A stretch of DNA of 64,000 bases from Oikopleura dioica (Eukaryota; Animalia; Chordata), in NCBI GenBank assembly GCA_907165135.1, contig OU015568.1:12648001-12712000 (forward strand), given 5' to 3'. A program made the translations under genes and the position numbers. Below the pieces are notes generated by a model. The model saw only the letters and a list, made by a program, of their open reading frames with translations, was not told the DNA's origin and ran no database searches. Of this stretch, positions 2,464-50,581 are shown one piece after another (the first letter of the stretch is position 1; every line of letters begins with the position of its first letter).

Positions 2464-5400
2464 ATGTTGCTGCTTTTCGGAGCATGTTTCCTGACGGGAA
2501 TATCGGGCCGAGTTCAATATTCGAGCTTCGATAACCTTGACGGAATCCAGGTTGGCTCCAAATTTTTCTATCTCAATGCACCGCAAGGAGCTGCGGCTTC
2601 TCCAGCAAACTTTAACGACGCAAAAGAAGTTTGTGAGATGAATGGAGGGAAACTCGCGATCCCTCAAAACGCAGATGAAGATCAAGCTATCTCTAGCTAC
2701 ATCGAGGAGCATTTTCTTGGAGATGCGTCTCAAATCCGACAATACGACGGGGCGTGGATCGGAATCTACATGCTTCAAAACGGAACTTTCATGGACATCG
2801 ATGGCAACCAGGCTGATTATGTTCCCCTTGATTTTCACTCCCGACTCGTCGCGGATTTCGATATTTGTCTTTCCATCACTCAAGGTTTCTACTTTTCGTC
2901 CTCGGAAAGCAGCTACACTGAAGCAGTGATGTGGGATGAGAGCTTCTGCGGCCGAAGTAAGATGCCACTTTGTGAGATCGATCTCTCCACGACCTGTAAA
3001 ATTACTCTTGTCGCCCCTGCTGTCGAAAATCTGAGCCTTTTGCCTCACGAAGAATCCTGTGAAGGAAGCAGCCGATGTTTCAACGGGACATTGGTTGTTG
3101 ACACCTGCACTTTCCCTACTCTCTATTCTGTCAACGAGACTGCTTGCGTTGATCCAAGAGAAGTGCCAGAATGTGATGTTAACGAGTGCCTTGACCCGAA
3201 CGCTTGTCCTGTCAACTCCATAAACTGCACGAACGAAGTGGGTACATACACTTGCGAGTGCGATGCCGGATACGAATTCAACGACTTTGGCTGGACTTGG
3301 AACACAACTGCTTGGGAATGTTCAGATATTGACGAGTGTGCTGAGCAACTTGATGACTGCAGCGGCAGGAGCTCCTGTAATAATTTTGACGGTGGTTTTG
3401 ATTGCATCTGCCACACTGGTTTTTATTACGAGAACTTTACCCACGGAGAATGCGTCGACTACGATGAGTGTCACGATGGAATCTTCTACGATAGAAATGT
3501 TTGGCCAGCGATTCTGATTGGAGACAGTCAAGATCCGATGAACACTTCTGTCATGGCGGATGTCTGGGAAATGATCACAGCATGCCCATCTTTCTCGAGT
3601 TGTGCCAATCAGCTTGGAGCGTACAACTGCACTTGTGATGATGGGTACATGATGAAGATGGATAACTTCTCTGACTATGGCTTCATGTGCGAAGACTTCG
3701 ACGAATGTGCAAGTGGCGATCACATGTGCGATGAAAACGCTTTTTGCGACAATGACTCGCCTGGTTACAATTGTACTTGCATGATCGGTTACATTGGTGA
3801 TGGCTGGAACTGCACTGACGTTGATGAATGTGCGGACGGAACTGATATGTGTGACGATAATGCTGTCTGCGACAACTTCGACGGCGGATACAATTGTACA
3901 TGTGAAGTAGGCTGGGAAGGATCTGGATTCAACTGCACCGATGTTGACGAGTGTCTCGAAGAAGAAGCTCTCCGACAAATCGGCGCTTTTGATGACTGTG
4001 ATATCAACTCTTCTTGTAACAACTTGCCAGGATCTTACAACTGTACCTGTGACGAGGGATATTTTGGAGATGGATTTAATTGCACCGACGTCGACGAGTG
4101 CGATCTTGGGATTGATATGTGCAATGATAACGCGGAATGTGGCAATTTTGAAGGTGGATACAACTGCACATGTGTGATCGGATGGGAAGGAGATGGTTTC
4201 AACTGTACGGACGTTGACGAATGTGCACAAGAAGATCTTCTTAGACAAATTGGTGCATTTGATGACTGCGATGTCAACTCAGTTTGTCAAAACTTGCCAG
4301 GCTCGTACAACTGCACTTGTATGGACGGATTCACCGGTAACGGAACCGTCTGCGACGATATTGACGAGTGCTCAGACGGATCCAACGACTGCCATGAAAA
4401 TGCTTACTGCATGAACTTTGATGGCGGGTTTAACTGCACTTGCATGGAAGGATATTTCGACGCAGGTTCCCAAAATGATACAAGTGGTACCTTATGCGAG
4501 GACTTTGACGAATGTCTCGCGGGAACCGATGCTTGTCACAATCAAGCTACTTGTAACAATACTGATGGAAGTTATACTTGCGATTGTAATGACGGATTTT
4601 ACGGCGACGGCTTCTGCTGCAAGGATTCTGATGAATGCGGATCACAAATCTTTTCAACTACTGATGAACCTACAACAACTACAAATTGGCAACCAACAAC
4701 GACTACATTAGAAAGCTGCGAGTTCGGTCCGATCTCTCTTCCATGCCCAGCTGATTTTGAAGATTTCAATGGACGATGCTACAAAACACTTTCTAGCCCT
4801 CGAGATTATTATGCTGCTGCTGACCGATGTCAAGAACTTGCTTTCGAAAATGACAGTCCGAATGGCTACATCGCGACTTTTGTTGATGGAGCTCCTTTCT
4901 CTGAGCAATTTGATGTGCTTGTTTCACTTGCTGGTGATAAAGCACCTTGGATGGGGTTGGTCTGGAGTAGCGGCTTCTACGGGAACATATTTGGGGAATC
5001 ATTTTCAGAAATTTTGGGTGATAATGATGCCAGTTTCTTTTGGGCGCCGAATTTCCCAAAACCAGCAAACGGCGACTGTGTCCATTTCACACTTGTTGCC
5101 ACTTTGAAAAACAACGATTGCTCGATCGAAAGACCAGTCATTTGCATGATTGAATATCCCGAAACATTCCCTGTTGACTCTCAAGTTGCGACCAATAACT
5201 GCAGTGCGTTTGCCACTTGTGCCAATACTTTCGGAGATTATGAATGTTTCTGCAATGACGGCTACAATGGAACTGGATTTTCTTGCGAAGATGTCGACGA
5301 ATGCGCTTTAGAGATCGATGAATGCGGTCCTGCTAATGTCGGTTGTGTTAATTTTGACGGAGGCTACAATTGTACTTGCGAAGACGGCTACCGAGGAGAT

Positions 5401-8067
5401 GGTTTCGACCCTGCTTTCCTCGCTACTCGAATCGCTTACACCGGGTGTGAGGATATCGACGAATGCTCTGAAGGAACTCACATGTGTCACGGTATTGCAG
5501 ATTGCACAAACTTTGATGGTGGTTACAACTGTACGTGTCATCTCGGCTATGAAGGTGATGGATTTAATTGTACTGATGTTGATGAGTGCCGAGAAGAAAA
5601 TATGCTCAGAATGGTTGGCGCTTTTGACGACTGCGATGAAAATTCACACTGTTCGAATTTCCCTGGTGGTTACAATTGCACCTGCAATGATGGATTCCAA
5701 GGCGATGGATTCAACTGTACCGACATCGATGAGTGTGCAGAAGATGGAACTTGTCATGATAATGCCTTCTGCAATAATTTTGACGGAGGATTCAACTGCA
5801 CTTGTTTTGATGGCTACCAAGGCGATGGATTCAACTGTACTGACATTGATGAATGCGCTGATGGATCTGATGAGTGCGTCGATTTCTCCTTCTGCACAAA
5901 CTTTGATGGTGGCTTCAACTGTACCTGCGAAGACGGTCTCGAAGGAGACGCCCTCGTTGAGTGCGTTGATATGGATGAATGCGCTACCGGATTTAACACT
6001 TGTGGTGAAAACGCAAATTGTACAAACACTTTCCAAAGCTATGAGTGTTCCTGCAATCCTGGATTCCACGATGCCGGATATTGTCCAAGAGGATCTTCTG
6101 ATGGATCGGATGACATGTTCTTCTCCACCATTGACCATGACAACTGCATTAATCTTTACCCATCTCTACGAAATTTCGACGAAGCCATCAATATCTGCCA
6201 AAACGAAGGCGGTGAACTCTTGACCTTCGATCAGACCAATCAAAATGATCTTAGCATGTTCAACGCTTGGGTTTTCAATATTGCTGCTGGTCTCCCTGCT
6301 TGGATTGGCTACACCGCTCCATCTGGTGCCAACGATCCATCTTTGATGACCAATATATACACAAATGAACCAATAGCGAGTACATTCAACCTTGCGCCAA
6401 AACACCCAAATATCTGGGACGAAGCCTGTTTCCACATGACGGCTATCGGCCAGTGGAAACAATCCGAATGCACAAAGTTCAGACCAACTCTTTGCATCTT
6501 TGATCAAGGTCCTGTTGGGGAGATTTGCGAAGACATCGACGAGTGCGCGGAGAATATTTGCGCTGAAAACGCTAATTGTGTCAATTCTGTCGGTTCTTTC
6601 GAGTGTACTTGTCCAGATGGGTTTTCTGGTGATGGTTTCACTTGCGAGGATATCAACGAGTGCGATTTTACTCCTGTTCCATGCGCTGCTAACGCAAACT
6701 GCAACAATTTTGATGGTGGATTCGAGTGCCTCTGCGCAGAAGGATTCGAAATGAATGCCAACGAAACTAGCTGTGTTGATATCAATGAGTGTGCTGACCC
6801 AACCACTTGCTCTGATCCTAATTCTTCGTGTTCCAACACTGAGGGAAGTTTCTCCTGCGACTGTAATGCGGGATACGAGCTTGATACTACAGATCTCTGC
6901 GTTGACATCAACGAGTGCCTCGATGGATCCAACCAGTGCTTCCATCAACTTGCTACTTGTGCTAACTTGGATGGAGGGTATGAATGTATCTGTGCCGATG
7001 GGTACGAGGGAGACGGTCTTACCACTGGTGATAACTGTACTGATATCGACGAGTGCTCAGATGCAACAATCTGCGATGCTAAGGAGAATAGCGAATGTGT
7101 CAATTCAGTCGGTAGTTATGATTGCGCTTGCAAACCTGGCTTCTTGCCTCTTGGAACTGAGTGCCTTGATTTTAACGAATGCCTTATCCCAGGCGCACAT
7201 GATAAGTGCGATCCCGTCAATGGAATCTGCGACAACACCATTGGTTCATATGAGTGTTCTTGCCCAGAATTCTTCAGCGGTAACGGTACGGTCGATGATC
7301 CTTGTGTCAGCGACCTTGGTTTCTGCTTGTACGACGAACTCAACATCGAAAATGCTGTAATGACTGATTGCAGCACATCAACAGATGAGTTCGAATCCTG
7401 CACCGGTGTAACTTGTGCTCAAGGTCTTTACCTGACTTTTGATGGAAAAGACCCCATGAATATTGTTTCTGAGTGTACCTGCGACAATCATGTCAACTGC
7501 ACTCATACCTTGAACAAGAATGTTGCCTGTGTTGACTGCCCCGATAACGATGTCATCACTTGGTTTGGATTCAGCACAAATCAAATCAAGGTAAGACATT
7601 CGTCAGTCATAAATTATTTAGATATTGACTTTCAGGTTTCCGGCCCAACCGGTGGCCTCATTCAATCCCGTGTTGAAGCCAACCTCGCCGTCACTTCTGA
7701 CTGGAGCACTTACACCGTTCTCTTGGTCTTCCCAGGCGATCTCACCGACGCACGAATTTTCACCTGGGTCTTTGACGTTGCTAACGTTATTCTTGAAGCT
7801 GATGGAAGTTCTACAATGGTTGTGCTCAACCAGAATGCGAACTCTCCAAGTTTAACGGACGCCTGGTCCGAGTTCTTTGTTGGTCTCGACAACGTTGCTT
7901 CAATTGTTGACTCGGATGACTTGACAACATTCAAAGTTGGAGTTATGCCCGGATCTATCGCCAACCCAGACTGTGTTCTCGATACAAACGCTGATATGCC
8001 ATCAGAATCTTCCTCGAGAATCAAGCAGAGAAAAGAGCGAAAATATGCAAGAAGAAATAATGCATAA
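2464..8067 (+). CDS. Large secreted matrix protein with 3 C-type lectin domains, a CBM14 chitin-binding domain, many Ca-binding EGF repeats and a C-terminal beta-rich domain (oikosin/fibrillin-like)
   Basis: 1867-aa ORF with signal peptide, repeated D(V/I)DEC...C.N..GG(Y/F)NCTC, and CTL motifs (AWIG, WMG). PHEESC..CFNG..C..C..PEC fits CBM14. Probable in-frame 45-nt GT-AG intron at 7591-7635. Confidence 0.88.
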   Translation: MLLLFGACFLTGISGRVQYSSFDNLDGIQVGSKFFYLNAPQGAAASPANFNDAKEVCEMNGGKLAIPQNADEDQAISSYIEEHFLGDASQIRQYDGAWIGIYMLQNGTFMDIDGNQADYVPLDFHSRLVADFDICLSITQGFYFSSSESSYTEAVMWDESFCGRSKMPLCEIDLSTTCKITLVAPAVENLSLLPHEESCEGSSRCFNGTLVVDTCTFPTLYSVNETACVDPREVPECDVNECLDPNACPVNSINCTNEVGTYTCECDAGYEFNDFGWTWNTTAWECSDIDECAEQLDDCSGRSSCNNFDGGFDCICHTGFYYENFTHGECVDYDECHDGIFYDRNVWPAILIGDSQDPMNTSVMADVWEMITACPSFSSCANQLGAYNCTCDDGYMMKMDNFSDYGFMCEDFDECASGDHMCDENAFCDNDSPGYNCTCMIGYIGDGWNCTDVDECADGTDMCDDNAVCDNFDGGYNCTCEVGWEGSGFNCTDVDECLEEEALRQIGAFDDCDINSSCNNLPGSYNCTCDEGYFGDGFNCTDVDECDLGIDMCNDNAECGNFEGGYNCTCVIGWEGDGFNCTDVDECAQEDLLRQIGAFDDCDVNSVCQNLPGSYNCTCMDGFTGNGTVCDDIDECSDGSNDCHENAYCMNFDGGFNCTCMEGYFDAGSQNDTSGTLCEDFDECLAGTDACHNQATCNNTDGSYTCDCNDGFYGDGFCCKDSDECGSQIFSTTDEPTTTTNWQPTTTTLESCEFGPISLPCPADFEDFNGRCYKTLSSPRDYYAAADRCQELAFENDSPNGYIATFVDGAPFSEQFDVLVSLAGDKAPWMGLVWSSGFYGNIFGESFSEILGDNDASFFWAPNFPKPANGDCVHFTLVATLKNNDCSIERPVICMIEYPETFPVDSQVATNNCSAFATCANTFGDYECFCNDGYNGTGFSCEDVDECALEIDECGPANVGCVNFDGGYNCTCEDGYRGDGFDPAFLATRIAYTGCEDIDECSEGTHMCHGIADCTNFDGGYNCTCHLGYEGDGFNCTDVDECREENMLRMVGAFDDCDENSHCSNFPGGYNCTCNDGFQGDGFNCTDIDECAEDGTCHDNAFCNNFDGGFNCTCFDGYQGDGFNCTDIDECADGSDECVDFSFCTNFDGGFNCTCEDGLEGDALVECVDMDECATGFNTCGENANCTNTFQSYECSCNPGFHDAGYCPRGSSDGSDDMFFSTIDHDNCINLYPSLRNFDEAINICQNEGGELLTFDQTNQNDLSMFNAWVFNIAAGLPAWIGYTAPSGANDPSLMTNIYTNEPIASTFNLAPKHPNIWDEACFHMTAIGQWKQSECTKFRPTLCIFDQGPVGEICEDIDECAENICAENANCVNSVGSFECTCPDGFSGDGFTCEDINECDFTPVPCAANANCNNFDGGFECLCAEGFEMNANETSCVDINECADPTTCSDPNSSCSNTEGSFSCDCNAGYELDTTDLCVDINECLDGSNQCFHQLATCANLDGGYECICADGYEGDGLTTGDNCTDIDECSDATICDAKENSECVNSVGSYDCACKPGFLPLGTECLDFNECLIPGAHDKCDPVNGICDNTIGSYECSCPEFFSGNGTVDDPCVSDLGFCLYDELNIENAVMTDCSTSTDEFESCTGVTCAQGLYLTFDGKDPMNIVSECTCDNHVNCTHTLNKNVACVDCPDNDVITWFGFSTNQIKVRHSSVINYLDIDFQVSGPTGGLIQSRVEANLAVTSDWSTYTVLLVFPGDLTDARIFTWVFDVANVILEADGSSTMVVLNQNANSPSLTDAWSEFFVGLDNVASIVDSDDLTTFKVGVMPGSIANPDCVLDTNADMPSESSSRIKQRKERKYARRNNA

Positions 8068-8238: not shown

Positions 8239-9156
8239 TCAGCGACAGGTACTTGTTGTTTTTTGGTAAAACATATCTTTACAGTGTACCCCGGCTGGCC
8301 ACGAGAAGCCCTCCACTTTGACGAATTTCATAGTACAGACTTCTTCCTTTTCGATGGATACTTTTTGAATCGATCCACGTCCACAGCAGAGCTCATCACA
8401 GGTTCCAGCTCCGTATGATTTCGTAGCGTCGCAAACTCTTCCTCGAGTGACTTCGCAGAAATTGGGAGATTTCTTCCCAAAGATCAATCGGTCGTTGATG
8501 AACGAATCGAAGACTGCTTTTGGTAGAATTTCAAGTTGTCGTTGTTGGATTCGAGCAGCAGATTCGTACTTTTCTTTGATAATTCTGTTCATCTTATTGA
8601 CGTTCGTGCTCGCTTTCCAGCAGGTTTTCTGAGCGCAGCTTCCGGAAGGACCATGGCACTTGCAGACAGTATTCTTGGCGCTTTCAGCAGCATTTCGACC
8701 GACTTTGTTATTGTGAATTCCAAATAAGAAGGGCTTCTTTTTAAGAGCAGCGACATCGGTAAATTCAAGAGCGAACTGCTCAGCATTGAAATTTTCACAA
8801 TCAGCTGAGCCCAGTTTGCAAAATTTTTCGAGGGAGTTCTTGAGATGAGCCGTAGCGAGAGCATGGAGATATGCGCTTTCTTGAGTTGGTTGTTCAAGTT
8901 CTGGTTGCTCTTTGGGAAGCGTTTTGATGCCGTTGCAGCCCCAGAGGGTGTCAGACATCGACTCGAAGCAAGAGGAAGAAGTGACTTCAGCTGCATTCTT
9001 AATCGCAGGGGCGATGAAGCTATTGCGTCGACAGAGATTTTTTTGCTGAGAAGTAAATCCAGAGTAGGAGCAGATCTCACCAGCCGAAGATCGGATGCCA
9101 ATCCAGGAGAGAGAAGATGCCTCTGAAAAGGCAAGGAGAATGTTGGAGATTTTCAT
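8239..9156 (-). CDS. Wnt ligand, intronless and divergent (probably Wnt11-type)
   Basis: Signal peptide, ESAYLHAL, HNNKVGR, CKCHGPSGSC..KTCW, SPNFC and LCCGRG, all in one uninterrupted ORF. Confidence 0.9.
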   Translation of the reverse strand: MKISNILLAFSEASSLSWIGIRSSAGEICSYSGFTSQQKNLCRRNSFIAPAIKNAAEVTSSSCFESMSDTLWGCNGIKTLPKEQPELEQPTQESAYLHALATAHLKNSLEKFCKLGSADCENFNAEQFALEFTDVAALKKKPFLFGIHNNKVGRNAAESAKNTVCKCHGPSGSCAQKTCWKASTNVNKMNRIIKEKYESAARIQQRQLEILPKAVFDSFINDRLIFGKKSPNFCEVTRGRVCDATKSYGAGTCDELCCGRGSIQKVSIEKEEVCTMKFVKVEGFSWPAGVHCKDMFYQKTTSTCR

Positions 9157-9499
9157 TTTTGGTTGTTTTTGTAAGAGTTTGAATGATCATTGAAGGTATG
9201 TCTCCGCTTTTATATCGTCAAAGACTGTAGCGCTAGAACCTGATTCAAACAGATGTCCCAGTATTTTTTCTTTGAAGCGCAGATGGAAAATATAGCCAAC
9301 ATCCGTTTTTATCTGATTGTCCATCGTATGTTGCAACTTCTCAGAAGTGATCCGCAACAGATGCACCGATCCACCTTACCGAAACAAGCGGCTATCAAAC
9401 AAGCGAATATGCATGAAATCGTAGTTCAAAGGTACAGGTTCAAGAGTAATTAGGTCAAGAATATACAAATTCATAATTATCTAAATTTTCCACTTCGGG

Positions 9500-9645
9500 T
9501 CTTTTTCGAGAAGATGATAGAATATTCCAGAAGAATTTGAAGGCTCCAGACGACAGACATCTACAGATAGAAGATTCCAGAACATTGTACCCTGGAAATA
9601 GAACCTTCTGGAAGAAACGGCGCCAGTCATCAGAAACTATAAATA
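9500..9645 (+). promoter_or_regulatory. Heat-shock elements and TATA box of sHSP copy 1
   Basis: Arrays of inverted nGAAn: GAATATTCCAGAA, GAAGATTCCAGAA, GAACCTTCTGGAA. TATAAATA at 9638-9645. Confidence 0.8.
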
Positions 9646-9697
9646 CCGGACGAGAGACGGTTTTTTCATCACACCAGAGACACAAAAACGAACGAAA

Positions 9698-10129
9698 ATG
9701 TTTACTTTTTCCAACGAACACTTTGAACCGCTGATGAACCAGCTCTTTTCTGAGTTCGCCCATTCCGCCAACAAGCGAGGAGGATGCTGCCAAACTGCTG
9801 AGAAATCGAGCAAGTGGTGCAGCTGCATCAACCTTTCTTCCATCCCCACCAAGGCCGAGGAACTGCACGTGAAGGTGGACGAGAAGAGCCGCACTTTGAC
9901 CGTGTCTGGAAAGTCTGAAACCGAGTCTACTCGACGAGACGGATTGAAGATCTTCTCAACGCACGTTTGGACAAAAGAAATTCGAATTCCAGAGGATGTG
10001 GAGCTGAAGACGATCGCGTCAAAGTTGCAGGAGAATCAGCTCACTTTCGTCGCCCAACGAGTGCAGAAAGAAGAAGAAAAGCAACAAGAAATTCCGATCG
10101 AGATCGTCGATACTCCTGCTCTTGACTGA
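9698..10129 (+). CDS. Small heat-shock protein (alpha-crystallin/HSP20 domain), copy 1
   Basis: 143-aa intronless ORF with EELHVKV..LTVSGK..KEIRIPEDV..IASKLQENQLTF. HSEs upstream and AATAAA at 10201. Confidence 0.85.
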   Translation: MFTFSNEHFEPLMNQLFSEFAHSANKRGGCCQTAEKSSKWCSCINLSSIPTKAEELHVKVDEKSRTLTVSGKSETESTRRDGLKIFSTHVWTKEIRIPEDVELKTIASKLQENQLTFVAQRVQKEEEKQQEIPIEIVDTPALD

Positions 10130-10259
10130 GAAAGTCGATTATCGTTCATTCTTTTCTTAGCTGATTTTACGGAAAACACATAGATACAGTATTAACCTGC
10201 AATAAACGGAATCCTGATTTAAATTTTGCTACTTATGCTGGCTAGAACCAGCCTCCTTC

Positions 10260-10378
10260 GCTTAGCGTCATACCGCGTAGAATAAACCAGTTCTCGTCCG
10301 ATCACTGAAGTCAAACTACGACGGGCGGGGTTAGTACTTACATGGGTGACCGGTTGGGAATACCTCGTGCGCTAAGCA
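10260..10378 (+). rRNA. 5S rRNA, copy 1
   Basis: 119 nt with terminal helix GCTTAGCG...CGCTAAGC and box C-like GTTAGTACTT..ATGGGTGACC..TGGGAATACC, followed by a T-run terminator. Confidence 0.93.
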
Positions 10379-10647
10379 TTTTGCATTTTATTCAAATGAT
10401 GATTATCGTTTTTAACGAGGAGCCGTTCATGTCGTAAATAATTCAACAATTGTTGAATAACCAACTCTTTAGTCATTGAAAAAAGTCACCATGTTTGCGT
10501 GCGGCAAGCATTGAGTTTTGAGCTTGCCTGGCGGGCGGCGTGGCACTTGGGAAAAAGCGCCCTCTACCGCGCGCCTTTCTGAAAAGAGGCCGAAAATAGG
10601 AGCGCGCAGCGACAAAACGACCTCGAAATCAAGGACCCCTTCTCTTT

Positions 10648-10740
10648 ACTCATCCCATTTTTGAGTCCGATTTCGATTGTCTAACAGGTAAGAATCGTCT
10701 CCATGCCCTCTCTCTCCTATCCCTCTCGCCTCTTACAAAA
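10648..10740 (+). ncRNA. Spliced-leader RNA locus, copy 1 (exon 10648-10687, donor GTAAG; 3' end uncertain)
   Basis: Matches the 40-nt O. dioica SL exon as recalled, followed by GTAAG. It lies downstream of 5S, the linkage reported for this species. Confidence 0.88.
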
Positions 10741-10828
10741 AACAATCATGGCCCTACATACGAGACTTCTCAGGGGTGGCTGAAACTTTCCAGCCCACCT
10801 CCGGACTTAAGGGACCTGGGCGAGCAGC

Positions 10829-11135
10829 GACGTGCTTTTTCTAAGGTCAACGAAGTTTTCCAGTCCACTTCCGCCTTATAGACCCCCTAACATTATACCT
10901 TTTTAGAATCAGCAGAAAATTTTAAGAACTTTGACGGTTTAAAATTCTTGAAAACTCCACTTCCGGTCGATTCTAGAGCCGGAAATTGACGAAATTTAGG
11001 TGTAATGGTAGAGTGTGACCTCTCAAATTGATGCTCAGAAGATTTTGAGTCATCCTGTAATCAATATATCTGAAGAAACACTCCCAAACGGGGTGAAACC
11101 GACCGGTAAAATTATGTAAAAAAAGGCATAAATTA
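10829..11135 (+). mobile_element. Diverged, truncated MITE of the same family as 49253-49856, forming the palindrome spacer
   Basis: Starts GACGTGCTTTTTCTAAGGT, like the TIR at 49253. Shares collinear blocks CACTTCCGGT..GATTCTAGAGCC, GTGTGACCT.TCAAATTGATGC.CAGAAGATTTT and GAAGAAACA.TCCCAAACG.GGT. Confidence 0.85.
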
Positions 11136-11229
11136 TACACGGGGATTCGTCCCACGCGGTTAAGTCCGGAGGTGGGCTGGAAAGTTTCAGCCACCCCTGA
11201 GAAGTCTCGTATGTAGGGCCAAGATTGTT

Positions 11230-11322
11230 TTTTGTAAGAGGCGAGAGGGATAGGAGAGAGAGGGCATGGAGACGATTCTTACCTGTTAGACAATCGAAAT
11301 CGGACTCAAAAATGGGATGAGT
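11230..11322 (-). ncRNA. Spliced-leader RNA locus, copy 2 (exon 11283-11322)
   Basis: Reverse complement of copy 1. Confidence 0.88.
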
Positions 11323-11591
11323 AAAGAGAAGGGGTCCTTGATTTCGAGGTCGTTTTGTCGCTGCGCGCTCCTATTTTCGGCCTCTTTTCAGAAAGGCGCG
11401 CGGTAGAGGGCGCTTTTTCCCAAGTGCCACGCCGCCCGCCAGGCAAGCTCAAAACTCAATGCTTGCCGCACGCAAACATGGTGACTTTTTTCAATGACTA
11501 AAGAGTTGGTTATTCAACAATTGTTGAATTATTTACGACATGAACGGCTCCTCGTTAAAAACGATAATCATCATTTGAATAAAATGCAAAA

Positions 11592-11710
11592 TGCTTAGCG
11601 CACGAGGTATTCCCAACCGGTCACCCATGTAAGTACTAACCCCGCCCGTCGTAGTTTGACTTCAGTGATCGGACGAGAACTGGTTTATTCTACGCGGTAT
11701 GACGCTAAGC
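11592..11710 (-). rRNA. 5S rRNA, copy 2
   Basis: Reverse complement of 10260-10378. Confidence 0.93.
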
Positions 11711-11840
11711 GAAGGAGGCTGGTTCTAGCCAGCATAAGTAGCAAAATTTAAATCAGGATTCCGTTTATTGCAGGTTAATACTGTATCTATGTGTTTTCCG
11801 TAAAATCAGCTAAGAAAAGAATGAACGATAATCGACTTTC

Positions 11841-12272
11841 TCAGTCAAGAGCAGGAGTATCGACGATCTCGATCGGAATTTCTTGTTGCTTTTCTTCTTC
11901 TTTCTGCACTCGTTGGGCGACGAAAGTGAGCTGATTCTCCTGCAACTTTGACGCGATCGTCTTCAGCTCCACATCCTCTGGAATTCGAATTTCTTTTGTC
12001 CAAACGTGCGTTGAGAAGATCTTCAATCCGTCTCGTCGAGTAGACTCGGTTTCAGACTTTCCAGACACGGTCAAAGTGCGGCTCTTCTCGTCCACCTTCA
12101 CGTGCAGTTCCTCGGCCTTGGTGGGGATGGAAGAAAGGTTGATGCAGCTGCACCACTTGCTCAATTTCTCAGCAGTTTGGCAGCATCCTCCTCGCTTGTT
12201 CGCGGAATGGGCGAGCTCAGAAAAGAGCTGGTTCATCGGCGGTTCAAAGTGTTCGTTCGAAAAAGTAAACAT
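11841..12272 (-). CDS. Small heat-shock protein, copy 2
   Basis: 143 aa. Differs from copy 1 at three N-terminal residues (L>P, F>L, S>L). Confidence 0.85.
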   Translation of the reverse strand: MFTFSNEHFEPPMNQLFSELAHSANKRGGCCQTAEKLSKWCSCINLSSIPTKAEELHVKVDEKSRTLTVSGKSETESTRRDGLKIFSTHVWTKEIRIPEDVELKTIASKLQENQLTFVAQRVQKEEEKQQEIPIEIVDTPALD

Positions 12273-12461
12273 TTTCGTTGGTTTTTGTGTCTCTGGTGTA
12301 ATGAGAAAACCATCTTTCGTTCGGTATTTATAGTTTCTGATGACTGGCGCCGTTTCTTCCAGAAGGTTCTATTTCCTATCAAGTGCCTATCAACTTTGTT
12401 CAAAGTGAAGAATAAAGATTACAAATCAACAGTGTTTTATAAATTATAATGCTTTTAATAT

Positions 12462-15400
12462 TCAATGCTTCCACATAGAAGAATATATTTTGGAGGTAAT
12501 TGATTGAGGTATTGTGCGGCGATCAGCTGAGGATCGTGTGGATACAGATGATAGAGATTTTGATGGCTTCGACTTTTTCTTTATGTCATCAGAAGTCACT
12601 ATGTTTTGAATAGGTTTTAAAGTCATTTCTGAGGAATCACCTGAGGGAAAAACCCGGTTCTTACGAGCTTTTTTCTTTTTCTCTTTTGGATTGGAATTAG
12701 ACTTCGAAGCTCTTAAATTCACTTATTTTTCCAATTTTTAACAAAGAAAAAATTAACCTCGAATCACCGGAGGTTTTTTCACAATTAGTGCTACTTTTCG
12801 AATTTAATGCTGGCAAATGTCTCTTTTTAGGCAGAGTATCTTGGATCTTTACCCCATCACTGTTTGCTACAATTCTGTCTTCGGTTTACTATGTTATTGC
12901 GAAATTATGGCAATGAGCTATCTTATTTTCCGATTGAACCGAGGCCTTGGTTTTGGAGTTTCTGTATTCCAGGGGTTACGACTAAAGAGGCGGTCTTTTT
13001 TCAAATCATCAAGGTGACACTCTACTCGTTTCTTCCTTCTCCACCATGCCTGGATGATCACTGCTGCTTGAGCTGACCTTTGCACGTATTCATGACGACG
13101 TCTTGCTTGTTTCAGAAGATGATGACGAGCTCCAGGCACAGTTCCGAAAAGATGTCTTGCAAAAGCTTCGGGGGATTCTCCACTGTACCTAAGTGCTTTA
13201 TCAAGTTTCTCACTATCGCTTATTCGGGCTTTGATAGATCCCTGAGTTCTAGCCTTAAACTTCTATGTCTTTTTTTCTTGAGATTAAATAGGCCCGATAA
13301 AATTATGTCATTTCTCAAGCCGTTCATAGGAATTTCTTCGCGAAAAAGGATTCCTTCCACTTTCACAGAGCTAAGTTTTCTTGGAGTCTGAGTTTGATGC
13401 GTTTTCGTTTTCAGTTCCGTTTGTGTTCCGATCGAGACTCTTATTGGGTTTGGCGGTGGTGCTTCTACCGGTACAAATGTGCTCACAACTTGCTCTCGTT
13501 TTTTGTTCTCATTGATTTCAGTTATCGGCGTCGCTTTTGACATTGAAGCAATTCTTATTCGTCTTATTTCATCTGCATCGCGTCGAAGATGTTCTTGCTT
13601 TAGCATAAGGAATTTTTGCTTTTCTTCTTTGAGATTTTCACTGTATCGTCTCCATGCTCGCTGAATCTTACTTGCAGCCAGGTGCTTCACGTCTTCACCA
13701 ACCAGTGCGTCCAAATTTATTAAAATAGCAATTGCATCCTGATGATCCGCTTCAAATGCCATGTCAAGTGGTGTCTCTCGCTCGATTGAGAAGGTCATCG
13801 AATTGATAAAAGCATGATATTGGAGAAGAAGTCTCATTGCTGCAACATGATTACTTCTTGCTGCGAGATGAAGGGGAGTGTATCCGTTTTCGTCTTGAGC
13901 GTCGACATCAGCGCCCCATTCCAGGAGGGCTGCCATCGAATTCGCCTTGCCATTTTCACTTGCAACATGCAGCGCTGTCTGACCTGATGAGTCTTTTATC
14001 TCAAGTCTGAGCATATTCTTTGCATTCGCAAGTCTTGCAATGTATTCGATCACATCTGCATGACCAGCTTCAGCTGCAAAATGGAGCGCAGTACTTCCAA
14101 AGTTGTCCTTTTCGAAGGTTTGAAATTTCTTTAATAAGAATCTTTTGAAAATAAAAGGAAATAGAAATCTATCCTGATGGAAAATCTCTTCTGGTGACGC
14201 ATTATCCGCTAGATTCTTTACAGTTGACAAGCTGCCGGACTGAAGAGCTCCAAAGAGCGCCGTTTGACCATCATGATTCGATGCTTGAGTATCTGCCCCA
14301 CGAGAAATTAAGGCACTTACACTCAGACTTTTGCCATGTGCAGCAGCTGCGTGGAGTGCTGAGTTACCATCATTGTCTACTGCTTGAATCTCACCACCGG
14401 AATGGATCAGCTAAAAGCTCTCTATGAGTATCCGGTTTCCAACAATGAAATCAAATAAAGAAAATTCTTCAAAGCGTACTTTCTCGATCGCGAAATCAGC
14501 GCCACGAGATGCAGCCCACATAAGAGGAGTCGCACCAGTTTCATCCTTGACATCCACATTTACCCCATGTTTGAGAAGCAGTTGAATAGATGTCTGGTGA
14601 TTTGACGTGCTTCCAGCCGCTGCGGCGTAATGCAGTGCTGTTGCCCCATTACAGTCCTTATGAATGCCAAAAACTGACGAAATTCTAGTCCTACCTGCGC
14701 ATGAACATCAACATCGCCATCAATGAGCTCTTGAATAAAATCAGCACGCCCGAGCTGCGCGGCCCAGTGAAGAGCCGTTCTACTTAGATTATCGGCTAAA
14801 TTAACATCACATCCTTTAGCTTTTCAGAGGTTCTGATGATTCTAAAGAAATTTAATGATGAGTTGCCACCTCAAATCCTATTAACAAAGACGCCACGCTT
14901 TTGTTTGCAGCTTTGACGGCAACATGAAGTGCAGTCCGACCTTCATGATCCTGCCAATCAATAAGAGAAGAACTCCCTTTCTCCAGTAGCACCTCCGAAG
15001 TAAGAACAGCATCTGCTTGAGTATTTCCAGCGCAAAAATGCAATGGAGTCTTTCCTTTCGAGTCGCCAATATCTGGGTTCGCAGATGCCTTCAAAAGAAG
15101 ACGGACAGCTTCCACATTGGCAAAATAGCTAGCACAGTGAAGCGCGGACTGGCCTTGATGGTTTTGAACATCAATATAATCAGAAGACATCGCTTTTAGA
15201 ATATATTTTACACATGATCCGTCGGTGATTCTACGATTGGTAGCAAGATGCAGCGGAGTTTGACCATCTTTATCTGGTAGGGAAAACTGACAATTCTTAG
15301 CAACCAAGAGCTGAAGAAATTTAATCGATCCCTTATGTGCAGCGATGTGAGCAGCACTTCGACCAACATTATCGACGGAGCTAACTTGAGCTCCTAGTCT

Positions 15401-22867: not shown

Positions 22868-25512
22868 TTATGGCTCGGTTTCAGAGGGAGAATTTGAACT
22901 TTCTGTCCATGGAACTCGCTCGTATGGAACGTCGATATATGCACGAGGAACACATTCAAGAGTTTTAAGTGATTCCGCGGATTTATCCTTGTCTCCAAAT
23001 GCAATTGCCAAGACGCGCATTTCAAGTGAATCGGCCCGCGGAAACTCTGGCGCACAGAAGTTCTCATCGGGTATCTGGATCCAGCAAGTTTTCCCTTCAG
23101 ACGCTAAAAAGATTAAAATATTCACTATCAATAAAGTTGACTAACTTTCAAGGAAACGAAACATCGCATCATGGTCAATCCTTTCGTCGTCTCCTGGGAT
23201 GTAATCTCCGATTATAAACGGAATTCCCTGCGCCGGAAGCTCCCAAAATTCTCTTGGCCGATTGAGAGAGATTACTAATTAAACTTTGAAGACGCTTTAA
23301 TTTTCTATTCCTTACCATCAACAAGTTGAATATGTCCGTAGTCAATGAAATAAACGCGATGCAGCTTATCTTCGTCTCCTAAGTAAACTCCTCTGTAAAC
23401 TTTTTCATCGTAAATAGCCGTCACAAATGATCCAACTTTGACTGTTCCGATTGGTCGAATATGATCTATTTTATCCAAAAGTGCCTTTTCTAAAGACCAG
23501 AGTTCAACTGAAGAGTCCACATCTTGACCCCAAATGAACGAGCCCGAAGGATCGTAACGAGTTATTTTCACGGTCATCAAATCGTCGTTCGGCTATTAAG
23601 ACATAATGAGTTGATAAACTAAAATTCACAAAAGTCTTACCCAAGGAAGATTGTAGATAATGTTAGTAGGTGAACTTGAACATGAGATAGAACTACACCC
23701 AGAGGCTGCCGTATGTTGTGTATTGCCTGACATAACGCTTTGATTTTCGTCAAAGACTTGACGCTCGGTATCTTTCACTATTTCAGGAGCATTGAGGCTT
23801 ATTTCCGATAGTTTTGAGTTGACACTTGAAGAAGTTACGCTAAGGTTGTCTGATGCTGGGGATGGTACTCTTTTCTCTTGTTTTTGGCCAGCTGCATGTT
23901 GCTTTTGAGATTCGAAAGGAGCTGTAGAGCGAGATATATTCTGTTCTGTTTCATTCTTTTGCGTGTCAATTTTAGACGCTTCTTCGAGCTCAAAAATAAG
24001 GCTGCTGACTTCGCTACTGGAATTTGAAGAATTACTCGACGAGGTGGTTTTTGGTACAGCTGATAAGTCTTCTCGGTCGGTTGAAGGCTTCGAGGGAGAG
24101 TTTTTAGAGGGTGAAGGGCTTGAGGCGCTGCGTTGAAGCACGAGAGGACCGTTAGCTGGTTGCTTGAAGATCACCCCGGGAATTGATGGGGCGCGCTGGA
24201 GGTTCATTGGCGATTGTGATGGATAGTTTCGCCTGACTGAGTGGCCAGATTCTCCAGGCACGAACTCACGAACCTTAGAAGGTGACTTGAATTTGAAGCT
24301 CTCATTTTGTGAGCGAATTGATGGCGAGTCGCTCTCAAGAAAGTTCAATTCCTCCAGTATTTTAGAGAAATGAGTCATGTTGTTTTCTGGATGCTTTTTG
24401 TATAATTGGACCATTTGGGGTTCGCCGGAATCAAAAGGGATGATGAAGCAGGAGTAGCCATTCAGGTTTTGGTTCTTCTCGTCGAGGTACATATTGAAGA
24501 TCGATCTACATAAATTTTGGTCGCTTTCACTGTTGAACTTTTCTGGCTCGTAGATTTTACACTTCACGATTTCACTATTGCCTGGTGCTCTGTACAGCTT
24601 CTTGTTGAAAACTTTTCTAATTTCGCCAGTAATAAGCTCGATTTCAGAGTATCCAAAGGGACTCTCATTTGGCACTCTGATCGTTGCCAATTGAGGGATG
24701 ACTTTTTCATCCTTTTCCGACTCTAGCAAGTATATACAGGTCGAGTTGCGCATCTGTGGAGTAAGTTGAAGTTGAGTCAGCGATTCTAATTTGAAGTCAC
24801 TTTGGTGGAAGCTGTTTTTAACCACGGTGAAGAACGGTAGAGAAACAGATTCTGGTATGATTTCTGCTGTAAAGCCTCCCTTCGCGTTTGGATGCATAGA
24901 ACTTTGTGTATCTGTATGATGGCATCTGTTTTGGAAGCCATTGTATCGTGGGTTCTGGTAGTCATTCTGATTCGCACCGTCGAAAAAGTTTGTCCTGCGA
25001 TACGCTACTCTTGCGCTTTTCGGAATGTGGACTTTTGCGCTTATTCCGCCATAATCCCTGCCTCCTGGACCTGGGCCTCCAAGGAACATCGGTCTTGATT
25101 CGTTATTGAAATGTCTGTAAGGTCCTCTATTGGAGTTTATCATCTTCTCCACTCTAGCTGCAACTTCGGGCGAATTAAACGTTGCATACGCGAAGTTCGA
25201 GTTACTAAATCTATATTAGCTTTTTAGGTGATGATTCGTTACCAACCTGCTTTTTCGGTCTGGCTTGATTCTGAGAGAAAGGAGAGTTCCATCCACTTCG
25301 TTGCAAATATTGTTGAGGAGTCTCTCAATATCCCCTTCACCGTGCATTTTGGGAATGTTAAACAAAGCGACTTGTGTGCCATCCTGACAGTCGAATGCGT
25401 TCTCGCTGCTAGAAACCTCCTCGAAATATTCTCTATGATTGCCTCTATAGTTGCTAGTGTGGCTGCCTTGGTAATCTGCAAAGAAATCATCTCTATTGCG
25501 TGATCCCGTCAT
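22868..25512 (-). CDS. RRM + Tudor domain protein with a long Ser-rich linker
   Basis: RRM-like VALFNIP...NFAYATF. Extended Tudor VGSFVTAIYDEKVYRGVY...VYFIDYGH. Confidence 0.65.
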
Positions 25513-25728
25513 TCTAGAACATTCTCGAATTAGCACTCGATTGGAGAACCTTGGAGTTTATTGAAAATTTCTGTCTATCATATGCGGATTTCAGAATGCA
25601 ATATTTTGTAAGAATTTGTTAATGATTTTTCAGCAATGATTTTACTAGTAGAAGAAAAAAGGAAAAGAGGAGAATTAGCACTCCCCAGGCAGATCAGTGT
25701 GAGCGTGGGTGGTCGGACGTTGTCTAAA

Positions 25729-25992
25729 TTAGGCGTAGTAGAGCTCGAGTGAACAGCCGTCGTTGATCTCGTAGTCGTAGAGGGTGACGTTGTCCTTGAA
25801 CACGGTGTACCACTTCTTGAGAACGATCTTCTCATATCTACGCAAGCTTGAAAACACCAAAAACTACGCGAATTCGTACCTGGTACCAGTCTGCGCGGCG
25901 ACTAGCTTTTTCAAGTCACCAACAGTATCCTGCGGGTTGCACTTGATTCTAACCTTTTTGCCCAATCGATCATTAACGATGATTTCTATCAT
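25729..25992 (-). CDS. UBL5: Ubiquitin-like protein 5 (Hub1), 2 exons
   Basis: [38 protein letters not shown]|[10 protein letters not shown]...[14 protein letters not shown]. Confidence 0.95.
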
Positions 25993-26380
25993 TTTTATTC
26001 TTAAGTTTTTCTTGTCAGTGTTGCTAGCTTTACGACATCAAAAGTATTTTTTTGTTGTTGAAAAGAAAAAATGACTAGAGGCAAAAATGTTTTCTCGGAA
26101 AGAGTGAGCTGACTTTGACAATTCATTATTTCAGGGCAATGTTAGCTCTTTAAAAATTTTTCTAGGAAGAAACATGAGTCAAAGATAGAAGGTAGAGAAA
26201 GAACACGGTAAGATAAGAAACAAAATTTGCCTTTTTAATTTTTTTTTAATAGATGTGAGTAGTTCAGGAGGGCAGTATCAAGAGACTGAACGGAGTTACA
26301 ATAACTTGTTTCGCTTTTAAATGTCGTTGCTTTTAATGATGGTGCTTTCTTTTCGTTTTATTGGTCAAATTCTTCTACAG

Positions 26381-49856: not shown

Positions 49857-50394
49857 ATAACAATAAAGCGATTTTATGGAACTAACAAAAGACCAACTTC
49901 CCAAGTTGCTTCCAATTTGGAGGAAGTTTCTTTTAGAAAAACTTGACAATTGTTCTTCTACAATTTCCGTAACCACTCGATTTTAGGAAACACGCGCAAA
50001 ATTCCATGATCATAAATTATATTTACAGTTAGTTACATGTGTTAGGTTCTTGAATGAAACTCCGTCGATTTTCTTTTCTTGGGTTTAAAAGCAATCTTCG
50101 TAGAAATCGACTCTGTTACCATCGGGGCAGCACTAGAAAGTTTTCAAGAATAATGTCAATAAACGAGCTGACCTTCTGCCCCTCACGGTAGTACTGAACA
50201 TTGGGAATTCGTCCACAGCAGCCTATTATTTTTCCGTAGTGTAGGAATGACACGATGTTTGGTAGACTTATCGATCGAGCTAGAAACGAACATATCTGCT
50301 GGGGAAGAATAATCTGGGCTTGTATTTACGGCGTGTTAATATTTGTGTGGGGTTTTTTCTAGTTTGTTTGATGATTGTTTCTCCCCCGTGGGGG

Positions 50395-50581
50395 AGTGGG
50401 CCGAGCTCGCCGGTACTGCAATAGCGAGTCAACCCGTGGGAAGAGCGGAGCAAGCCCCTAACTACATCCCTAGTTCCAAAAATCAGGGTGACAATAGACG
50501 TCCCAGTAGGGACGGTCCCAGCTGTCACACTGAGAAGAACAGATACTACACTTGATCTTAGCCACAAAGGCCGGAAGCGAT
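50395..50581 (-). ncRNA. U2: U2 spliceosomal snRNA
   Basis: ATCGCTTCCGGCCTTTGTGGCTAAGATCAAGTGTAGTATCTGTTCTT, Sm site GATTTTTGG, GCTTGCTCC and loop IV ATTGCAGTAC. Confidence 0.96.

Follow-up and report, generated by a model that had tools for sequence, protein, structure and literature searches.

A 64-kb window of the Oikopleura dioica genome (64,000 nt; contig OU015568.1 of assembly GCA_907165135.1, positions 12,648,001 to 12,712,000) was analyzed. It contains a palindrome in which a small heat-shock protein (sHSP) gene, referred to here as sHSP-A, is joined to a 5S rRNA gene and a spliced-leader (SL) RNA gene. A repeat search of the window identified two inverted arms of 1217 nt each, which were 99% complementary and were separated by a spacer of 349 nt. 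Read from the outer end inward, each arm carries on one strand a heat-shock element (HSE), a TATA box, the sHSP gene, an AATAAA polyadenylation (poly(A)) signal, the 5S rRNA gene and the SL exon. A preliminary description of this DNA had proposed a 1217-bp convergent cassette present twice, and this was borne out by the repeat search, Rfam, Pfam and RNA-read evidence. Its anatomy of the arm, with an sHSP gene built into the 5S-SL unit, was confirmed as well; the distance from AATAAA to 5S, given there as about 55 nt, was 53 nt. Base-by-base comparison of the two arms gave 12 mismatches, 11 within 9649-9807 and one at 10748. The outer 214 nt of the arms, which hold 11 of the 12 differences, had diverged by about 5%, and the inner 1003 nt contained a single differing site.

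Inverted pairs of 5S and SL genes are known from this species. In Okinawa O. dioica the two genes form inverted repeats, and 22 of 27 copies are in inverted pairs (PMC8008620). The present genome matches that Okinawa assembly: the 5S/SL query coordinates of the paper (chr1:8487589-8879731) agree with positions of 5S genes on contig C4. The preliminary description had taken the 5S-SL linkage as known, correctly, and had taken the palindromic arrangement as unreported, which was wrong, as the inverted pairs are published (PMC8008620). The present locus is built in the same way, with a 5S gene in each arm, an SL gene downstream on the same strand, and two convergent units. As far as they are described in the paper that cites them, the 5S-SL inverted repeats of Ganot et al. 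2004 (cited in PMC8008620) also consist of a 5S gene followed by a same-strand SL gene in two units facing each other, and they also occur in tens of copies over several chromosomes. Unlike the repeats so described, each arm of the present locus adds a complete HSE-driven sHSP gene upstream of 5S. No mention of a linkage between sHSP, 5S and SL was found in the searchable literature, and Ganot et al. 2004 lies outside that search. Convergent pairs accounted for nearly all of the SL exons (at least 53) and 5S genes (at least 47) in the genome. The SL count was made with a 36-nt core including the GT donor, which gave 53 matches (48 exact and 5 with one or two mismatches). Inverted 5S-SL pairs were seen at 15 or more loci.

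The HSP20 domain (PF00011) was detected in both sHSP copies with 37 bits against a cut-off of 20.8 (E = 4e-9). An HSE, composed of three inverted nGAAn units, lies near the TATA box at 9638, which is the arrangement of a gene controlled by heat-shock factor (HSF). Perfect HSE matches numbered six in the window, where 2.3 were expected by chance, and four of the six were at the two sHSP promoters. The ratio of nonsynonymous to synonymous divergence (dN/dS) of sHSP-A was 0.06-0.10 between lineages and 0.07-0.38 between loci within the genome, indicating at the sequence level that the gene evolves under purifying selection.

Transcript-derived proteins with 97% identity to sHSP-A (P0001, for example) are present in marine metatranscriptome catalogues. 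Following a two-residue prefix, the first residues of these P0001-type proteins are those encoded from 9671. We took the prefix to come from a template-switch oligo, and transcription of sHSP-A probably starts near 9671, about 33 nt after the TATA box. Because the transcript-derived proteins begin with the genomic 5' untranslated region (UTR) and not with SL sequence, the sHSP-A mRNA is probably not SL trans-spliced. In the unstressed oligo-dT RNA, 0 reads fell on the two sHSP copies of this locus, which fits a tightly inducible gene. The Bergen orthologue CBY12776 shares a 90% cluster with P0040. In an array study of Bergen O. dioica exposed to benzo[a]pyrene, CBY12776 was induced 14.5-fold and its neighbor CBY12775 21.4-fold, and the two top the table of induced HSP genes (PMC3292500 Table S1). 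The study also reported that HSF1/4 was induced and that promoters of the induced HSP genes contain HSF sites (PMC3292500). Overall, sHSP-A seems to be a functional chaperone gene that is inducible by stress.

Two side observations concern the heat-shock elements. In DNA run X4, one unitig has 16 other letters in place of 9161-9583, and a second X4 unitig covers the region. The replacement has the appearance of a structural polymorphism in which both distal HSEs are lost together with the upstream region of the neighboring Wnt gene. Away from the palindrome, two overlapping perfect HSEs occur at 25512-25529; the open reading frames (ORFs) beside them, 23626-25152 (-) and 25784-26074 (+), had no Pfam match.

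The 5S genes are presumably transcribed by RNA polymerase III (Pol III) through internal control regions. A TATA-like box with the consensus cTATATAa at -30 to -23 was conserved, with variation, among the 36 5S genes examined, most of which also had TAGAACCAGC at -17 to -8. The TATA-like box was kept with or without an sHSP gene upstream, and it was least canonical in the two 5S genes of the window. The start and the donor of the SL exon were visible in an oligo-dT, template-switch RNA run: in 167,402 reads the switch oligo immediately precedes 10648, and after 10687 more than 200,000 reads split into unrelated mRNA sequence, although these SL-bearing reads may stem from any SL gene copy. Homology between different 5S-SL units ended near 10745. 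The last 24 nt or so before the SL start (10624-10647) contained an 11-nt motif, CGAAATCAAGG, and a T-rich run, both in common with the upstream region of a Bergen U6 gene (L069 3474-3493). Comparison of the SL promoter with the U2 gene of the window gave no clear match. The motif shared with this one U6 upstream region weakly suggests a promoter of the small nuclear RNA (snRNA) type for the SL gene. Rfam analysis of the palindrome center and the SL region returned no family at E up to 1.

Table 1. Features of the sHSP-A/5S/SL palindrome (positions counted from the first nucleotide of the window)
Feature	Position	Strand	Details
Left palindrome arm	9594-10810	+	From repeat search and base-by-base comparison
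Right palindrome arm	11160-12376	-	From repeat search and base-by-base comparison
Asymmetric center	10811-11159	.	10829-11134 is one arm of a dispersed repeat (fold-back or MITE-like, that is, like a miniature inverted-repeat transposable element)
Inner arm end	10746-10810	+	Unmatched in the other 5S-SL regions fetched
Distal HSEs (two)	9520-9532 and 9570-9582	+	Pattern match; left flank only, outside the repeat
Left proximal promoter	9601-9645	+	HSE at 9601-9613; TATAAATA at 9638-9645
sHSP-A, left copy	9698-10129	+	143 amino acids, alpha-crystallin domain, intronless
Poly(A) signal of sHSP-A	10201-10206	+	AATAAA; hexamer ends 53 nt before 5S
TATA-like box of 5S	10229-10236	+	About -31 to -24; degenerate at this locus
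5S rRNA, left copy	10260-10378	+	Rfam RF00001, full length, 97 bits versus gathering score of 38; T-runs at 10379-10389
SL proximal promoter block	10600-10647	+	-48 to -1; 90-94% conserved in Bergen and metagenome copies
SL exon, left	10648-10687	+	40 nt; GT donor at 10688; SL RNA body to about 10745
SL exon, right	11283-11322	-	Right-arm copy
5S rRNA, right copy	11592-11710	-	Rfam RF00001, full length, 97 bits
sHSP-A, right copy	11841-12272	-	Three residues differ from the left copy: L12P, F20L, S37L
Right promoter	12325-12369	-	TATA at 12325-12332; sole HSE of the right copy at 12357-12369; cut off at the arm boundary

Protein and DNA searches of the genome found eight intact sHSP-A copies with 90-100% protein identity. 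Two are at the present locus, one each is at C1:13.335M, C1:13.435M, C1:13.737M and C1:14.490M, and two are at C4:12.013/12.017M, where they form a second palindrome. All eight were followed by a 5S gene on the same strand, 130-134 nt downstream. For the survey of linkage, loci of about 3.4 kb were merged to 21 regions and annotated, which gave 36 full 5S genes; 5S/SL genes at about 10 places (C1:7.555M, C1:2.02M, C2:2.645M, C2:11.12M, C2:11.51M, C4:14.06M, C5:6.51M, C5:12.27M, C5:12.48M, C5:13.51M and C5:13.82M) were left out of it. About 12 further units among the 36 had truncated sHSP-A 3' coding sequence or 3' UTR directly upstream of 5S. These relics were located at C1:13.821M (two units), C1:14.486M, C1:14.4927M, C4:11.763M (two units, C4:11763451 and C4:11764886, with the AATAAA block retained), C5:14.003-14.009M (four units) and C2:5.591M (two units, with a 54-bp coding fragment). 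No trace of sHSP-A was found at 16 of the 36 surveyed 5S units. With eight intact copies, two of them at this locus, and about 12 relic copies upstream of 5S genes, the linkage was wider than the preliminary description had supposed.

Elsewhere in the genome, the usual module is larger and reads 5S-SL(+), sHSP-B(-), 5-8 HSE matches, sHSP-A(+), 5S-SL(+), SL-5S(-). The paralogue sHSP-B, which shares about 35% identity with sHSP-A, is missing from the present locus. The palindrome on C4 (6.5 kb, C4 12.0117-12.0183 Mb) has the same mirrored sHSP-A/5S/SL arm, in which the inner part is again identical and sHSP slightly diverged: the 5S-SL spacers of its two arms are identical, and the coding sequences are 98.6% identical. 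A difference is that the C4 palindrome has the divergent partner sHSP-B and six HSE matches per arm, whereas the present locus has no sHSP-B, three HSEs on the left and one on the right. The rank correlation between pairwise identity of sHSP coding sequences and identity of the linked 5S-SL spacers was not significant (rho = 0.26, p = 0.25).

Relatives of sHSP-A were then compared across lineages. A large protein collection contained 75 of them, including proteins of Bergen O. dioica and many transcript-derived ('merc') entries. One metagenome locus (L071, 90% identical to sHSP-A) carries the same module of sHSP-B, HSEs, sHSP-A and 5S. In four other metagenome loci (L073-L076, 78% amino acid identity, synonymous divergence (dS) of about 2.3), a 5S gene lies 130 nt after the stop codon and is followed by SL. 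In a contig of the Tara metagenome (L077, 57% amino acid identity), 5S begins 65 nt after the stop codon. This 5S gene (L077 548-666) is identical to that of the window over 119 nt though the adjoining sHSP is only 57% identical, indicating that 5S has stayed unchanged in sequence over a deep split. In three aligned groups, namely the Okinawa copies with L071, L073 and L077, the sHSP poly(A) signal is located 40-90 nt before the 5S start.

The Bergen assembly showed the linkage in another form. Its locus on FN653139 (L078, 73% and 79% identity) reads 5S SL> <SL <sHSP, 3 HSEs, sHSP> SL> <SL <5S, with an SL gene directly after each sHSP. Like the present locus, it has two HSE-driven sHSP genes (CBY12775/CBY12776, strongly stress-induced) between 5S-SL units. 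The differences are that SL directly follows sHSP with no 5S between them, and that the two sHSP genes are head to head and not in separate arms. Bergen FN653740 (L069) and a metagenome contig from ENA (L070), both with 72-74% identity, are similar to L078 and have a U6 gene alongside. This U6 snRNA gene (L069 3494-3600 and L070 2682-2788) is situated about 680 nt upstream of 5S in a 5S-SL unit, and a 32-nt 5S fragment lies between the two genes. Another Bergen locus (L068, 79% and 85%) contains a head-to-head sHSP pair with a tRNA gene downstream; neither 5S nor SL was found at L068. A further metagenome locus (L072, 82.5%) is without 5S or SL in its contig, which covers about 2 kb downstream of the gene. 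The comparison across lineages called for in the preliminary description therefore found the linkage of sHSP to 5S/SL in the Bergen assembly and in metagenome contigs as well. Judged from these sequences, linkage of the sHSP family with 5S and/or SL predates the split of these lineages, and it is neither universal nor fixed in form. The palindrome is of a known kind, and the sHSP built into it is real, recurrent and old.

The explanation that we favor, with a probability of roughly two in three, is that sHSP-A has been co-amplified and co-homogenized within a subfamily of 5S-SL units. sHSP-A would have joined this subfamily before the cryptic lineages split. Since then it would have been copied, dispersed, homogenized and, in many units, lost along with the 5S-SL units. 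Each arm would consist of three separate transcription units: sHSP-A, with an HSF/TATA promoter, RNA polymerase II (Pol II) and AATAAA; 5S, with the TATA-like box near -28 and a T-run terminator; and SL, with its block at -48 to -1. The likely gain would be several copies of a gene that is expressed in bursts, and not control of 5S or SL output. Co-amplification with the 5S-SL units would explain why sHSP-A is multi-copy. If so, a subfamily of 5S-SL units has carried a working, stress-inducible protein gene since before the cryptic species diverged, with nearly fixed spacing, and provides a concrete case of a Pol II gene amplified and homogenized by the repeat dynamics of small-RNA genes. In other animals, 5S genes are likewise embedded in multigene repeat units, together with histone or snRNA genes. 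In the SL1-5S repeats of Caenorhabditis (C. briggsae, PMC7986045), 5S also travels and is homogenized with unrelated genes in one unit. Compared with the SL1-5S repeats and other composite 5S units, the partner here is a stress-inducible chaperone gene, and the units are dispersed inverted pairs and not long tandem arrays.

Under co-amplification, the present locus would be a local inverted duplication of a composite unit made of the heat-shock promoter, sHSP-A, 5S and SL. The left flank (9505-9593) extends the homology to other sHSP-A promoters, back to about 9505-9564, and the right arm ends at the position corresponding to 9594. This continued promoter homology, together with the unmatched sequence at 10746-10810, suggests that one unit was duplicated locally in inverted orientation. 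The left copy, with its full promoter, is the likely parent, and the right copy would have been cut 104 nt upstream of the ATG. The inner kilobase or so was most likely made identical by gene conversion from arm to arm, spreading outward from the center. The repeat at 10829-11134 is about 300 bp long. At least 77 copies were counted genome-wide, and the majority lie away from 5S-SL units. The copies are mostly paired and inverted, about 70-90 bp apart, and other 5S-SL palindromes also have one or two copies of this dispersed repeat at their centers. One speculation is that the inverted duplication was initiated by a fold-back repeat lying beside a 5S-SL unit.

Four points weigh against this explanation or parts of it. 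Across lineages with saturated synonymous sites, the 130-nt spacing has been preserved, as has the way in which the poly(A) zone overlaps the 5S upstream box; a gene that was only carried along would not require this much conservation. That the three units act independently under stress is an assumption. Short-read polishing, rather than gene conversion, could account for the identity of the inner kilobase. Finally, no long read or contig spans the palindrome, and the DNA runs consist of Logan unitigs of 100-450 bp, which are too short to test the join of the arms.

One alternative is that sHSP benefits from its Pol III neighbor. An occupied 5S or SL gene would keep the locus nucleosome-poor and poised, and it would act as a roadblock terminator or insulator in a compact genome. 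The constant position of 5S, 130-134 nt downstream of every intact sHSP-A, agrees with this idea, as do the downstream genes elsewhere, which are 5S (L077), SL (L078) or tRNA (L068), and the persistence of the linkage across lineages that are highly divergent at synonymous sites. However, L072 has no such neighbor within 2 kb, and the copies within a genome arose by duplication of the whole unit and hence are not independent events. The proposal is also hypothetical as regards chromatin and termination, and we regard it as unlikely.

A related possibility is that an interaction between the two polymerases is what keeps sHSP 65-134 nt upstream of 5S, or about 190 nt upstream of SL in Bergen. 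On heat shock, Pol II would meet the Pol III gene and either be terminated by the roadblock or silence the 5S-SL copy and make double-stranded RNA (dsRNA) from the convergent arms. With a poly(A) signal 40-90 nt before 5S, termination of Pol II after cleavage implies its entry into the 5S gene, which makes some physical interplay under stress plausible. If true, there would be a built-in link from proteotoxic stress to the supply of 5S rRNA and spliced leader. We consider that an interaction of this kind is doubtful as the reason for the spacing. The genome itself offers a natural test bed for mutual influence between a heat-shock gene and a neighboring Pol III gene, with eight linked, about 12 decayed and many unlinked units.

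The preliminary description had proposed a stress-linked Pol II/Pol III module, in which HSF-driven transcription of sHSP-A on heat shock would open the chromatin or read through and thereby alter 5S and SL output; the convergent copies could also yield a hairpin of about 1.2 kb or dsRNA. Read-through by Pol II is a consequence of heat shock in other animals, and trypanosomes show disturbed trans-splicing under it; both count in its favor. So do the strong HSE clusters in the sHSP promoters, the end of AATAAA just 53 nt before 5S, where the expected cleavage zone abuts the conserved TATA-like box of 5S, and the conservation of the spacing in L073-L076 despite a dS of about 2.3. But intact sHSP is linked to only eight of the 47 or more 5S genes and 53 or more SL genes, and many units without sHSP retain perfect 5S and SL. 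The Bergen units have no 5S between sHSP and SL, and some members of the sHSP family have no 5S or SL neighbor. The unstressed oligo-dT RNA, a library blind to stress effects, had 0 reads over the center (10838-11171) as well as none on the sHSP copies. We therefore judge a stress module of this kind to be improbable.

An assembly artefact, with the second arm made by a Nanopore fold-back chimera or a collapsed repeat, would fit the missing spanning reads and an inner kilobase identical except for one base, but it is highly improbable given the 11 outer differences between the arms, the distinct and unique left and right flanks, the asymmetric 349-nt spacer, the unitigs from two other samples that stop exactly at 9593 and 12376 as true repeat borders predict, and the recurrence of the convergent design at 15 or more loci, in the independent Bergen assembly, in metagenome contigs and in published work.

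The palindrome is intergenic. On its left is a Wnt gene (8239-9156, -) and on its right an ankyrin-repeat gene (13220-14230, -). The possibility that the palindrome lies inside the Wnt gene was rejected, since the Wnt ORF (8239-9156, -) begins with an ATG of its own, and two stretches of it match the Wnt profile. On inspection by eye, no further Wnt-like exons were apparent in the flanks of the palindrome. The Wnt gene has a single exon, and its ATG faces the left sHSP promoter, so that the two genes are head to head. Beyond it is an uninterrupted ORF of 1867 amino acids (2464-8067, +) with calcium-binding EGF and C-type lectin domains. The window also contains a full-length U2 snRNA gene at 50391-50581 (-), detected with 157 bits.

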